From NCBI GenBank assembly GCA_907165135.1, contig OU015566.1, forward strand, positions 6,448,001-6,512,000: a DNA stretch of 64,000 nt. Reading direction: 5' to 3'. Shown one piece after another: positions 43,293 through 57,207 of this stretch (position 1 is the stretch's first letter; the number at the start of each line of letters is the position of its first letter). The notes under the pieces are model-generated. The model saw nothing but the letters and a program-made list of their open reading frames with translations. It did not search any database and had not been told where the DNA came from. This DNA is from Oikopleura dioica (taxonomy: Eukaryota; Animalia; Chordata). The position numbers were made by a program, and so were the translations under genes.

Positions 43293-49676
<6,384 letters not shown>

Positions 49677-51547
49677 TTAGTTTAAGGATAATGTTTTTCA
49701 TAAAAATATTTCGATAATTGATATTCCACCTCCAGTTCTTTTAGTTTCTAATGTTTGAAAGTCAACGAGCTTAATTTAATTTTTTATAAAAAGATAACAG
49801 TAAAAATATAATTATAGTACTTTATTTTTTATTCTTGAATCTCTTGCCAAAAGCTCTTCCTTAAAAAGGCTTTTGAATACTCGACTAAGGGGATCTACTA
49901 GAGACGAGAAAATAATGCCATCTCGCGCGCTCCACATTTTTTCACCGAGAAGGGTTGAAATTTCAATTTTACCGATCTTCGATTCGAAAAAATCCAACTC
50001 TGGAGACACTATTTTCCCGATCATTTTCACTTTTTTCTTCCAAAAGCAAATGATCCCTTTACAAAACTCAGAAGCAGAGTATTTTTTGCCGAGAATTTAT
50101 TTGAAGAGGTTATTTGGACGAGAAGTGCGAAAAGTCACACGCACGGTTTTCTGCGTTCTTTACCGGTTGTACTGATTTGTGTGTTCTAGCGCGCGTGTGG
50201 AGAGTGAAAACATTTAGAGATAATAAATCAAGAGCGAATTTCACACCGAGGATAATCGGACAGCAACGAATTCAGGACTGAATCAAGGGGGGAAATTATG
50301 ACTCGTCATAGACAGATATTAATAAAGTTATGAAGAAGTGGCTACTAAAATATATTTTTAAGAGTTAATCATTTACTCTAGTCAGTAAAAATATTTATCA
50401 GCACAATTAAAAAGACCAGATATGGTTCCTTAATTAATATTGAAGTATGTTAATTTCAAACGAAGTCTTCAGCAGTAATCAAAACGTAGCCTGTAGATGA
50501 TTTATGAAGATAGTCACCAAAATGTTTTTTAATAAATATATAAAGAAACCCGTTAAAAGCCATTTATGGTCCTACTTTTTCATTTCTCATCATCTTTTCT
50601 TGCTTTTATTTATGATTTCCCTTCATCCAGCTTGGTGCCAAAAAGATGCACCTGTTGCCAATTTTAGCCGTATCAATTTATTTTTGAGAAATTAACCGTG
50701 AAGTCGGCGGAAATATTTGGATCAGGATTTATATCGAACACCAGCGCATCTAATTTTCACCAAACTTGATACTCTCTAATCTTTCAATTTCCCTTGCTTT
50801 TTCCGTAGAAATTTTATTTTTAACCTTCGAGAGGAAATGGTGGTCGAAAACAGCTGGTCATTGTCGGTACCATTGGATTCATTTTAGGGCTTTGTAGTCG
50901 ACCTTTTCTTCGTTTTTGGTCTCTTTTTGACTCTCACGCGCCAGGGTGTTAAAATGACTAGGAGGTCGTTGTTGATTGAAGTGGTTAAAAAGGGTTGATA
51001 AGGGTCTAATTCAATAGATCTTTCGTTTTGTGATGAATAGTAAAGTAGATTCTTAATTTCAATTTTCTCCCTATTTTCAGGTGCGGGGCGCGCGAGGTGG
51101 CCCAACTCGTGAAACAGCAAAAGCGCCACCACCGCCACCAAGAAGAGCGAGAGACAAGCACCGTACCACCACCACCGCCAACGAAAACCGGAAAATGAAA
51201 CGAGTCCAAATCAAGAAATCAAAATTTCATCGCGCTCAGCAAAAAACGCGCAACACGAAATCAAAACCAAATCCAAACTGACCCGAGTTTCAAAGGTCCC
51301 TCAAAGGAAGCGAAAATATTATAAGATTAATTTCTTCGATTCGATTCTAGTTTGTCTATTTTAGGCAAAAAAGACGGTAAAGCTAGCATCAAGAATTATT
51401 ATGATCAAATTATAGTCATCTTAAAAGTCAAGCTTAGCTTATTGGAGACATAGAAGAGTACAATTTTAACATCGGTTAAAACTCTTTTCCTATCCCTAAA
51501 TAAAAATCTGAGGAAATTTTTTCCAAAATTTCCTTTGAGAATAAAAA

Positions 51548-51738: not shown

Positions 51739-52328
51739 ACCTTCTCCAATGCCATAAAAATGCAAAAATGCAACTCGTCAGAAATCAATTTACTGCTCAA
51801 AATTGTCGAAATTAATCAACCTTTTGCGAGATTGCATTTTATTGACCTTTGAGAAGGTGAATATATCCGATTAGCGAATTTCATCCGGTTCCTCAAATTC
51901 CACGCTTGGTTTTTTTCTTGAAGGTCATCACGCTTCCTAATCATCAGTTTCTTCAAATAAAATACGAGTTGACTTCAGGGCGTCTAAAATCTGCCCTTGA
52001 CTTTACCGGCAATTTTCTTAATTCTGTGGGAATTTATGACAACCCTTCCGCTTTCAAGCGCCGAATCAATTTTTCCTTGCTTGTAAGTTTCCTTCTGAAA
52101 TCTACCACAATTCGGTAATGGACTTAGATTCGATTTTGTCCAAATTTCTTTCAGCGCCTCGCGCCGAAATGTGATTGGTCACGCTCTTTTCAAGAACGAT
52201 CGCGGCGCTCGCGAGGTGGCGCCTTTTCCAAACTTGGCCAGCTTCGAGACAATTGTTAATTGACAAATATTGCGGATTTATTTGAATTGAGTAGCAAATA
52301 TAAAAATCGAGTGAATATAAAAAGACTT

Positions 52329-53115
52329 CTAATAGCAGGATAAGCGCTGAGGAGATTTCCAGAATAATTTTCGGCAGGGAGTTTCAATGTGTCTCTTTGA
52401 TACCTAAAAAGTTAAGATTTTCATACACTTTTCGATAGATAGAGAACCATAATTGTTTGAAAAAACATTTGCTCCTGGTCTTTTTTTTAATTCATGCCAT
52501 TGGAATTTAAAGTGTAGACGCGTTATACAGTACATCGTAAGCCCGAGTCGTCCCCTATGAGTTTTTGTTCAAAGCTTATTTTAAGGTACCCCCCGTCAGC
52601 TTTTTCCTCCGAAAAATTGAAATTTTTGAAAACACCATATTTATGGTTCTTTATGTGTCCTTAAGGTAAACTTTCTTCAAAAACTTGATAAGACGAAGAT
52701 TTGACCAAGAAAAATCAATATTTTTGCCAAAATTAGGGCAAATTCTTCAATTTTCGGCGAAATGCTCAATTTTCAAATGCGATTTTAAGGGTGAAGGAGT
52801 CGAGATAGACTCCCAAAAATGAAGCCTCAAAATCGTTTTTGACCCGTGGAATCCATTTCCGGGGTGAAAATTTTAAAATTCCGAAATTTGATTTTTCAAA
52901 AAAAGCTGACGGGGGGGGGGGGTCCTTAATAAGAAAGCATAATTTGAAAATAGTAATCCTATTTTACTGTTAATAATATTATTTTTATAGGTATTTATCG
53001 TTTTTATGGCAAAAATATCAGTCAATAATCTTACCAGCATTGGAAATCCTCGTTCGCTAAAATATCTGCCTTGGACTACGCTCACAGCTGCGAAAACAAG
53101 ATTAAAAACTTTCAT
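52329..53115 (-). CDS. Somatostatin/cortistatin-like neuropeptide precursor (51 aa)
   Basis: Exon 53115-53035 (MKVFNLVFAAVSVVQGRYFSERGFPML, donor GTAAGA) joins in phase 0 to exon 52403-52329 (acceptor TTTTTAG; VSKRHIETPCRKLFWKSPQRLSCY*). It has a signal peptide, a KR site and a C-x3-FWK...SC ring. Confidence 0.8.
52585..52925. mobile_element. TTAA-flanked MITE with GG...CC termini (Kolobok-like) in the neuropeptide intron
   Basis: TTAA at 52581-52584 and 52926-52929; TIRs GGTACCCCCCGTCAGCTTTTT / AAAAAGCTGACGGGGGGGGGGGGTCC. Confidence 0.6.
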
Positions 53116-54614
53116 ATTTTTCTTTTCAAGCCTTGAAAAAAGTGGATTTTGTAAATTGTGTTTTGTTTGAGTTCTTGCGGCGAAAACCTTATTTTATAGC
53201 ACCCGACTTCGCAAGCTTTTTAATAATTGATTGGATTTATTAAAATGACCCTCGGCGCAAGAGGGCCACCAGCGCGCCTCCTTTGCATTTACAGTAGAAG
53301 CCAACACTTGTTGTTTGAACACGATACAGCTCCGAATCAAAGATACAGGGGGTAGTACAGGAGATCATACAGGTAGAGGGAGATGAGCAGCTTCAGTTGG
53401 TGTATACATAAGGGTCGTAACGGGCCATTTTCGTGACGAAATCACCGCGGGTGAAGACTTTGTGGATAGCAGACTTGAATCTCATCATTCTGAAGTCATT
53501 TTTAGGCCGTGTGAAAATAATTGAGTTTTTGTGAATAACGAAGTTAGGCGTAAGAATGATTTAATAATCCCAATCTATTCTATGTTTATATCATCAAGTT
53601 TTATCGTTATTAAATAAAGCGACCCTTTTTTTAATAAAAAAACAACAAGGGATAGAAATGGTTAAGAATGATGGCTCTGAAATATTTTTATCAAGCAACG
53701 ATGAGTTTCGCGAGCTGTTCGAATTGTCTTCGGTCAACTTTTTCGTCGAACTTGCATGATAAATTTATTTTTTATTTAGAGTCTACTTGTTTTTCTTGAT
53801 TTTTTAATCCTAAAAGCCACAATCTCCTCGTTGATTTCCAAAATTCTCACTGTTTCGTGTACCTCTTTAAATTTGTATTGCACCCCCTATCTGTACAGTT
53901 CTTAGGTGAAAATAAACTGAAATCGCTAATTGGTAGCCTTTTCGCATTTGAATCTTATAGACAGCTATTCGATTCGATTATTGAGATTCGTGCTAACTCT
54001 TATTGACTTACCTCGGGCATTGTCGATATCTTTGAGTTACCAGAGTCGCTATCGCGTCTTCCAAATCATAAAGCGACTTTGCCAGAAAGATTCTCCTCCT
54101 TGTCTCCAACTGTTCTGTGAAAAAGGTTCAATTGCAGGATTTGAACTTGATCTAATTGTCGATTTATTATTAACGAAAGCAGAAGAGAATGAATAAGATC
54201 ATAATTGGCCATTTTGAAAATGAGCAGGGCTTTCAGATTCTAATCGAATATGTCAGATTTGAATTTTGATGGTTTTTTTCTAATTGACTTTTTTGCTATT
54301 TTAATCGGGTTGATTACGCAAAAGATGCATATTCAATTCAAATTGCATCATGCGAAACCATATATAAAGAGGCCGTTTTTGTACTGTATCGACAGTAAGA
54401 TTGGTGAACCCTATCCTAGAGTGTCGATCTCACAATTGTACGGAATTCCATAAAAAATATCGGTGAAAACATCCTGGGCCCGGCTGCAGATCGACTGTAC
54501 TTTCTATTTTAAGGGGTCGACGGGGATATACGGAATGTGTTAAACACATCAGTACATAGTGCCAACACGAGGCTGTTGACATGATAAATGCCCGTACCGT
54601 CTACCCGATCCTTA

Positions 54615-57207
54615 TTAATAATTTCCCGCTTGAGTTGAAGTCCTCGAGTGCTCACACGAATCTGGAAGTTTAATAAGTCGCAGAATCGATCTACAATCAA
54701 GGTCAAAAATGCTGTCTAAAACAAACCATTCTACCTCCAAGAAGATCTTTAAAAGTCTCCGAATGAGTTGAGTGAGCCAGAACATATTGCATCCACGGAT
54801 TCAAATCGTCTAAAAGATGCAAAAGTAACAAATTTTGGATCAAATATTCTCCCTGAACATATTAAATATACTGACCATTAAAATCTGCCGCATCATTTTG
54901 AGTCGCTTTTCTAAGTGCGTTTTGGCAGGTTTCAAGCTCGTTGGTTAGTTTAGAGATGAAGATGCTTAGCGCTCCGAATTCTGGACGATGTTGTTCTTCG
55001 TTGTTTTCTTTGAAGGTTAATTTTAGAGAGTTGGAAAAAAGGGACCCAAAAGAATAATAAAAACAAAGAGTCAATGTAATATTTACCTGCTGAACCGAGG
55101 TAAGAGTCTGAATTTATTCCAATAAAGAGGTCTTCCGTTGTTGTTAAAAACTCTTCGGCTGCTGCAGTAGTCATCGAATCAGTGGTGGAGAAAATGCGAG
55201 GGTCAGATGATGTCACAGGAGTAGATACGGTAGTGGTGAGTTGATCCTCCGTTCCAAATAGAAAATCGCCCAAGCTGAAGTCCGAGAGCCCGTCTAAAAT
55301 CGGCGAGTCTGTTGTAATGCCACGGTTTAATTCGGAATCCGGCGAATTGGGAGTGATCAATAATTCATTATGCAGTGTTACTGTTTCTCGGGTCGAATCA
55401 GAATATGGAGTTGTATTTATCTCATCGTTGAAAGAGTTGGAATCAAAAGACGTTGAGTTCGGGTTGAAATAATCGAGGATTATTTCAGTGGATGCTTGAG
55501 CTTCAGTTGTCGTGGTCGTTGTCGTCGATGTGGTTGTTGTTGATACGATTTCGCAGTTTGCGCCAGCGAACCCATCTTGACAAATGCATTCAATCTCGGC
55601 GCCATTATATGTGCAATCGGAATCATTTTCACAAGGAGATGCTGTGCACGGATCATCCTGGCAGTCTTTTCCAGAGAATCCATCTGGACAGATGCATTCG
55701 TAAACTCCACCATTTTCTGTACAAGTTCCTCCGTTCTCACAAGGCTCGCCAGAGCAAGGAGTAAGTTGACAGTTTTCTCCAGAAAAGCCATCATCACAGG
55801 CGCATTCGTAGCCAGAGCCGATTACTGAGCATGATCCGTGTCCAGAGCAAGGATTTTGAGAGCACGGTGTTGTCTCGCAATTATCTCCTGAAAAACCCTC
55901 CTCACAGGAGCAGCGATAGGATGATCCGAATATTTCACAACTGGCACCATTTAGACAAGGACTGTCAGAGCAGGGGGTTGATTCGCATTTCTCCCCGCTA
56001 AATCCTTCTGGACAAGAGCATGTAAAATCTGATCCTTCAACAACACACGATCCATTATTGACGCAAGGATTTGCAGTACATGGCGTCATTGAGCAATTAG
56101 CGCCGCTGAAGCTAGAAGGACAAGTGCATTCAAAAGTGGATCCGTTGACTGAGCATTGGCCGTTGTTTTCGCATGGATTGTTTGAGCAAGGGTCAATTTC
56201 GCACGTCTCGCCAGAGTATCCAGACGGGCAGGAGCAAGCGCACGAGGTTCCGTTGATGGAAGGTAAGCCGGAATTGAGACAGGGGTTGGGATCGCAAGGA
56301 CTAGGGGTCGTGGTGATCGTTGTGGTTGTAGTTGTTGTGGTGGTGGTAGTTGTCGTCGTTGTTGTGGTTGTGGTGCTCGTAGTTGTGGTGGTTGTAGTTG
56401 TTGTTGTGGTAGACGTGGTTGTGGTAGTAGTAGTTGTTGTAGTCGTAGATGTCGTCGTAGTTGTGGTACTTGTAGATGTGGTAGTTGTTGTGGTTGTAGT
56501 AGAAGTAGAGGTAGTCGTCGTTGAAGATGTAGTTGTTGAGGTTGTTGTGGTAGTGGACGTCGTTGTGGTAGAAGTAGTAGTAGACGTAGTCGTTGTTGTC
56601 GTAGAGGACGTTGTCGTTGTTACATCTGGAGAAGATTCTGTTGGTTTTGTCTCAGTTGTTGTATCCACAATGATTTCCTCTTCACACGGACCCAATCTCA
56701 TTAAATCCGGTAATGGTCCATCAATATTCGTCCATCTAAAAACAGCCATGAATGGGAAATCAAAATCGAATCAAATATTCAAGTACATTCAAAGGAAAGT
56801 GGTATTATCCCATTTGGCTCGTTTTGACTTACCCAGCTTCAGTTGGACAAGCTCCCGAGTGCGTTCTGGAATATGCAAAGCCACTGTATTCGCCGGGCGT
56901 CATTGACACAAACCAGATCTTTGAACGGCAATAGAGGTAAATTCTATCCCCATTAAAATAAACTGCAGTTCCAGGATCAAAACGAGCGTCAGGAAAATTC
57001 GCGATTTCTTCTTCCCGCAAAATGTAAAATTGATTTCTATTTACGAGTTCAAATAAAACGCTCATCAAGTCTCATAAAAGATTCTCTTGCTAACTCGTTC
57101 CTTGAATCTACTGTATCTCTATACAAATTCAGCGTCAGTCGAGGACAGCAATCAAATTGCGCCGAGGAAAATCCAAACAATAAGAAGAAAAAATTTGCAG
57201 AGCGCAT
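54615..57207 (-). CDS. Secreted mucin-like protein with a long Thr tract and seven EGF-like repeats; 3' end uncertain
   Basis: Signal MRSANFFFLLFGFSSA at 57207; exons 57207-57060, ~57010-56833, 56735-55087 and ~55009-54877. Further open exon-like segments may extend to ~53400. Confidence 0.8.
56312..56612 (-). repeat. Thr/Ser homopeptide coding tract (ACN)n
   Basis: Roughly 90-100 T/S codons with mixed codon usage. Confidence 0.9.

Follow-up and report, generated by a model that had tools for sequence, protein, structure and literature searches.

A short two-exon gene of the larvacean Oikopleura dioica encodes a probable somatostatin-type peptide precursor

In the stretch of Oikopleura dioica DNA that was analysed (64,000 nucleotides, hereafter the window), we identified a mini-gene of this larvacean tunicate that is almost certainly a real gene, appears to be independently transcribed and has an mRNA of about 280 nt. 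Its product is very probably a secreted and processed cyclic peptide, and we consider it likely that it represents a tunicate member of the chordate somatostatin-type (SS-type) family, with conservation within the O. dioica species complex. Reads and contigs from bulk oligo-dT RNA-seq (runs X18 and X19), a 2016 marine metatranscriptome (X7) and DNA runs were placed on window positions 51900-54940. When JGI metagenome contigs were scanned with the precursor, one further contig, L001, was retrieved.

Gene model and predicted precursor

On the minus strand, exons 53115-53035 and 52403-52329 joined in frame, and scripted translation gave a 51-residue precursor, MKVFNLVFAAVSVVQGRYFSERGFPMLVSKRHIETPCRKLFWKSPQRLSCY*. 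The initial annotation had proposed two short exons with canonical splice sites that join in frame, and strand reading and translation showed this model to be exact to the base. The same translation contained the other elements it had named, i.e. a C-terminal two-Cys peptide after a dibasic KR (also conserved in L001), a ring of 14 residues including both Cys as compared with 12 in somatostatin-14, FWK three residues past the first Cys, and Ser preceding the last Cys. The elements of the gene are:

53192..53198, minus strand: TATA box (TATAAAA), identical in L001 at 1160-1166; the X7 contig has its 5' end 30 nt downstream of it
53116..53168, minus strand: 5' UTR; the X7 contig has its 5' end at 53168, where an Inr-like TCAAACA is found
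53035..53115, minus strand: coding part of exon 1, with ATG at 53115 and 27 codons for the predicted signal peptide and the start of the propeptide
52404..53034, minus strand: intron of 631 nt in phase 0, with donor GTAAG at 53034 and acceptor TTTTTAG; matched by the joint in the X7 contig
52329..52403, minus strand: coding part of exon 2, with 24 codons plus TAG for VS, KR and the mature peptide; covered by RNA from X18, X19 and X7
52392..52397, minus strand: Lys-Arg dibasic convertase site (AAG AGA), residues 30-31; L001 keeps KR with a synonymous AAG>AAA
52332..52391, minus strand: predicted mature peptide of 20 residues, HIETPCRKLFWKSPQRLSCY, with a ring closed by Cys6 and Cys19 and 12 residues between the Cys
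52260..52328, minus strand: 3' UTR with AATAAA at 52282-52277; its end probably lies at ~52260, and the X7 contig reaches 52299

The 53-nt leader contained no upstream ATG. As judged by inspection, the predicted signal peptide MKVFNLVFAAVSVVQG (16 residues, 53115-53068) consists of MK, a 12-residue hydrophobic core and VQG, after which the propeptide begins with RYFSERGFPML. Its GRAVY value was 1.49 in the window and 1.26 in L001, and both lineages kept V at -3 and G at -1. The mature peptide occupies the extreme C-terminus of the precursor, with 20 residues after KR and then the stop. The predicted 20-mer is basic (pI 9.4) and has a computed monoisotopic mass of 2489.25 Da in its cyclic, oxidised form and of 2491.26 Da when reduced; the cyclic form of the L001 lineage would have 2447.20 Da.

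On the basis of secretory-pathway biochemistry, signal peptidase would be expected to cleave after Gly16, and a PC1/3- or PC2-type convertase would cleave after Lys30-Arg31. The C-terminal 20-mer would then form the Cys6-Cys19 disulfide and be released as a cyclic hormone or neuropeptide of the somatostatin type. It is predicted not to be amidated, because a C-terminal Gly is absent. By resemblance to known ligands, the Phe-Trp-Lys turn may be offered to a GPCR of the somatostatin/urotensin class.

Transcription and splicing in two lineages

The 53035/52403 junction, for which the initial annotation had named RNA as the check, was found in the X7 contig, and the homologous junction was found in reads of X18 and X19. 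The X7 contig (249 nt, minus strand) covers 53168-53032 and then 52400-52299. Its joint omits exactly 631 nt and, with plus-strand ends CT..AC and an ambiguity of 3-4 nt, equals the predicted GT..AG junction 53035|52403. X18 and X19 share their species label with the window but aligned at only 85-95% identity, and we conclude from this that they derive from a diverged lineage. Seven of their raw reads, with distinct starts, connect exon 2 with exon 1, and the ten letters by which their two aligned parts are separated equal the exon 1/exon 2 junction of L001. Transcription and splicing at the predicted GT-AG junction hence take place in two lineages.

Differences between the X18/X19 reads and exon 2 of the window were located at 52368, 52383 and 52386, all of them synonymous third positions (in Lys, Glu and Ile codons), and a loose end at 52348 continues as ...SPQRASCY-stop. 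The depth of X18 on exon 2 was low, about 7, which fits a transcript from few cells; the divergence also lowers the depth. In DNA run X3, from organism B, both intron borders were kept and the intron interior was different, and there was no sign of an intron-less DNA copy in this run.

Altogether, the lineages in which the gene was located belong to a single species complex and are represented by the window, organism B, X7, and L001 together with X18/X19. The X18/X19 RNA-seq data, from 2026 and filed under the species label of the window, match the metagenome contig L001, and the DNA filed under a different label (organism B) is nearer to the window than they are. Since the X18/X19 reads are 85-95% identical and the organism B DNA is closer, the species label spans deeply diverged lineages.

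An orthologous gene under asymmetric selection

L001 is 3171 nt long and collinear with window 54692-50632, in blocks of 77-92% DNA identity. Its copy of the gene comprises TATAAAA, ATG, 27 codons, GTAAGT, a 173-nt intron ending in TTTCTAG, 24 codons plus TGA, and AATAAA, and the intron is in phase 0 after codon 27 as in the window. The L001 precursor product is MKVFYCVLAAANLVQGSFFNERGFPVRLSKRHIETPCRKLFWKSPQRASCY.

The two precursors differ very unevenly along their length. In residues 1-31 (signal peptide, pro region and KR), 19/31 were identical, as compared with 19/20 in residues 32-51 (mature peptide), where the sole change is Leu48Ala. Codons 30-51 (KR and mature peptide) carry 11 base changes and one residue change, with a dN of 0.046, a dS of 1.40 (pS 0.63) and a dN/dS of about 0.03. 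For codons 1-29 (signal peptide and pro region), these numbers were 0.24 for dN, 0.59 for dS and about 0.41 for dN/dS. When 11 changes were placed at random, <=1 residue change was obtained in ~5/10^6 trials. L001 retains both ring Cys, with TGC>TGT as a synonymous change, and CRKLFWK is invariant across the window, L001 and the X18/X19 reads. The Cys/FWK/Cys pattern, whose conservation in related species the initial annotation had made a touchstone, is thus retained in a related lineage at which synonymous sites are nearly saturated. Strong purifying selection is centred on KR and the C-terminal 20 residues. Neuropeptide precursors classically show this combination of a variable spacer with a frozen cleavage site and end peptide.

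Chance expectation, profile scores and database searches

We then considered how often the motif would be met by chance. The pattern C-x(3,4)-[FYI]WK-x(4,9)-C had a single occurrence in the window translated in all six frames, and shuffles gave 0.06 occurrences per 64 kb. The motif alone proves nothing, because dozens of chance matches are expected per genome of tens of megabases; the gene is raised above chance by splicing seen in the RNA of two lineages and by selection that is strongly asymmetric. Against an SS-type HMM, the mature peptide scored 10.3 bits, which was equalled by 1/5000 Cys-fixed shuffles, a weak test in that the profile was made from seven short published sequences. Against an ASTC-like profile the score was -0.5 bits, and 1673/5000 shuffles reached it.

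With Pfam at E<=10, no family was returned for the window precursor, the L001 precursor or the exon-2 peptide, and this includes the Somatostatin family. The Pfam failure weighs less if that model is composed mostly of vertebrate peptides with a 12-residue ring. The gene had been described as unannotated, in line with an exact look-up among 15 billion proteins, from which the window precursor and the L001 precursor were both absent. A word-indexed search of 5.8 billion clusters gave no relative among proteins of 28-89 aa. A HMMER search of 1.84 billion representatives gave three matches, two of which were tandem-repeat proteins unrelated to the peptide, and the third a 2016-aa protein aligned over just 25 residues. 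The blank from HMMER is uninformative, because even an identical 20-mer was estimated not to reach E<=0.001 there. Gene finders miss mRNAs of ~280 nt with 24-codon exons, and other hidden neuropeptide candidates here merit RNA checks.

Probable assignment to the somatostatin type and alternative readings

Chordate SS-type peptides bear FWK or YWK, and in somatostatin/cortistatin and echinoderm SS2 the loop between the Cys spans 10-15 residues (PMC9048919). Somatostatin/allatostatin-C genes are characterised by a conserved phase-0 intron in their N-terminal part, and urotensin II and URP genes by an intron in phase 1 together with additional introns (PMC7536072). In the peptide described here, the 12-residue loop between Cys6 and Cys19 lies inside the published range, the F of FWK stands at Cys+4 inside the loop (SS-type peptides have [FY]WK, or IWK in some echinoderms), and the gene has a single phase-0 intron in its N-terminal part. 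All structural characters of the SS type are thus present in the predicted product and its gene, and those of urotensin II and allatostatin-C are lacking. The somatostatin-family reading that had been put forward from the DNA is supported by the loop size, FWK, the C-terminal position, the phase-0 intron and the small profile test, with no Pfam match among this support.

The likeness to vertebrate somatostatin (SST) and cortistatin (CORT) extends to the precursor, the ring and the gene. Their precursors likewise have a signal peptide, a basic site followed by the active peptide as the very C-terminal segment, and one disulfide ring; a basic residue directly follows the first Cys, F-W-K starts from Cys+4, and Ser-Cys ends the ring. 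The genes have two exons and one phase-0 intron in the N-terminal part, and cortistatin shares Pro-Cys ahead of the ring. In contrast, there are 10 residues between the Cys in the vertebrate peptides (WK-TFT-SC) and 12 here (WK-SPQRL-SC), and the vertebrate precursors are much longer than 51 aa.

In a published alignment, the nearest look-alikes were human cortistatin (P-C-R-N-F-F-W-K...S-C) and an amphioxus peptide. The latter, AKGCARFYWKMPATAMSC from Branchiostoma floridae, also has an enlarged ring, [FY]WK at Cys+4 and Ser-Cys at the ring end. In that alignment it reads C-ARF-YWK-MP-ATAM-SC against C-RKL-FWK-SP-QRL-SC here, with Pro two residues past Lys in both (WKMP and WKSP). It differs in having 13 residues between the Cys instead of 12, and in the remaining ring residues. 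Echinoderm SS2-type peptides (e.g. ArSS2) similarly show FWK or IWK in a large ring, a C-terminal position and a phase-0 intron, but their WKGR-G and the Asp that precedes their aromatic residue are absent here. Allatostatin-C-type peptides, including echinoderm SS1, have a short ring with an FxP or [YF]FN...SCF core, and no such core is present here.

Three other readings were weighed against these likenesses. Placement in the urotensin II/URP branch instead of somatostatin proper would account for the FWK pharmacophore within a disulfide ring, which is common to urotensin II and URP, and for the ETP-x-C lead-in, since ETP-C before the ring resembles ETPDC of human urotensin II in the published alignment. 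We regard it as very improbable: the urotensin ring is a hexapeptide, CFWKYC, with four residues between the Cys as compared with 12 here, no Tyr-Cys follows WK in our peptide, and the multi-exon urotensin genes have a phase-1 first intron and two or three more, whereas a single phase-0 intron is found here. Even less credible is a chance ORF on a non-coding or untranslated transcript. The reading frame is very short, and the gene is known here from DNA and RNA, which would suit such an origin. Against it, the frame, length, intron phase, start, stop, KR and 19/20 mature residues were kept at a pS of 0.63, at P about 5e-6 under random placement of changes.

The reading that competes most closely accepts a real, secreted, convertase-processed Cys-loop peptide but holds that it is lineage-specific (an orphan hormone, an antimicrobial or a house-related peptide) and that FWK and the ring are convergent. 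It agrees with the missing Pfam match and with the fact that no homologue was detected outside the species complex, in searches that covered proteins of 28-89 aa and, with HMMER, were too insensitive for a 20-residue core. Chance alone yields such a short motif about 0.06 times in the six frames of 64 kb, the existence of somatostatin receptors in tunicates is doubtful, and Oikopleura evolves fast, its beta-catenin sharing only about 55% identity with the beta-catenins of other animals. On the other hand, convergence would have to bring together five independent family traits (the C-terminal position after KR, loop size, FWK at Cys+4, Ser-Cys and the phase-0 intron), as well as a profile score matched by only 1/5000 shuffles that is specific for the SS type and not for ASTC. 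On this evidence we consider convergence unlikely, though still to be reckoned with, and favour the somatostatin-type reading: descent from that family is probable, by a fair distance short of certainty. Whether the peptide would signal through a somatostatin-type receptor, as analogy suggests, appears to us an even question.

The question of somatostatin-type signalling in tunicates

Somatostatin-type peptides are on record for vertebrates, amphioxus and echinoderms, and tunicates are the sister group of vertebrates. In the searchable literature on Oikopleura, larvaceans, tunicates and Ciona, we found no report of a somatostatin-type precursor gene from any tunicate. For Ciona, this literature contains only old immunoreactivity data for somatostatin, cited in PMC5818035, and peptidome lists from which somatostatin is missing (PMC12441681). 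Somatostatin is not mentioned in the 2025 Ciona neuropeptide atlas. With regard to receptors, one Ciona study failed to identify an unambiguous somatostatin receptor (PMC3560075), and another survey lists one receptor in the somatostatin cluster (PMC2396169).

An expressed and constrained Oikopleura gene makes it testable whether somatostatin signalling survived in tunicates. The interest of the gene lies in comparative neuroendocrinology. The nervous system of Oikopleura is very small, the 20-mer is simple to synthesise, and single-cell RNA runs exist for O. dioica.

Genomic neighbourhood, promoter and intron element

The features surrounding the peptide gene are:

53169..53278, minus strand: conserved promoter block, 91/110 identical to L001; overlaps the 3' UTR and AATAAA of the upstream gene
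about 54692-54609, 54505-54420 and 53494-53395, minus strand: exons of the upstream same-strand gene, conserved in L001 and transcribed in X18/X19
52585..52925, no strand assigned: piggyBac-type MITE of 341 nt in the intron, flanked by TTAA target duplications (52581-52584, 52926-52929) and with perfect terminal inverted repeats of 17 nt
44302-44619 and 45272-45520, minus strand: Pax gene exons (paired box E 5e-12, homeodomain E 2e-17)

Identity to L001 was 83% in the promoter block, as compared with 60% (32/53) in the 5' UTR and 66% (42/64) in the 3' UTR. The 83% is not pure promoter constraint, because the block doubles as the 3' UTR of the upstream gene. The AATAAA of that gene (53241-53236) precedes the peptide gene's TATA box by about 40 nt, and the C-terminal end of its product reads ...KMARYDPYVYTN-stop / ...FTRGDFVTKMARYDPYVYTN-stop. 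Pfam gave no name for its three exon peptides. We also considered the peptide gene as a downstream operon member, with the neighbour ending ~50 nt upstream, and rejected this as the main reading, because a conserved TATA box lies 30 nt before the X7 5' end and the contig has no extra 5' letters. From the conserved TATA/Inr elements and the X7 5' end, we favour an independent promoter for the peptide gene.

The MITE in the intron is evidently a high-copy element, given its word depth of ~10^4-5x10^4 in DNA run X3. Its insertion is lineage-specific and tolerated, as it is absent from the 173-nt orthologous intron of L001. The inverted ends of the element follow a poly-C/G run.

The Pax gene is located about 7 kb downstream of the peptide gene. 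Human PAX7, CORT and UTS2 all lie on 1p36, and the Pax adjacency is possibly a trace of old linkage. The peptide gene may be co-orthologous to the vertebrate somatostatin/cortistatin and urotensin II lines. A bolder proposal, which we put forward tentatively and think rather improbable, is that the ancestor of the somatostatin/cortistatin and urotensin II families left this gene as its only descendant in tunicates, still 7 kb from Pax. Such a peptide might use a different GPCR, since tunicates may lack an unambiguous somatostatin receptor; if so, the ligand would have been kept while the receptor changed.

Two GC-rich and partly palindromic blocks, one on either side of the mini-gene, show conservation between the lineages (window 53245-53285 and 52190-52240; L001 1075-1112 and 1648-1680). 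Their sequences, GTGGCCCTCTTGCGCCGAGGGTCA upstream and AAGGCGCCACC..CGCG..GCGCC.CGATCGTTCTT downstream, loosely recall CCACC-type insulator motifs. Two further segments, window 51013-51142 (92%) and 50632-50885 (85%), were more identical to L001 than the exons of the peptide gene, and no obvious long ORF was seen in either of them. The next gene upstream (54950-56749, minus strand) is a single ORF with a long mucin-like poly-Thr/Ser stretch followed by about nine EGF domains.
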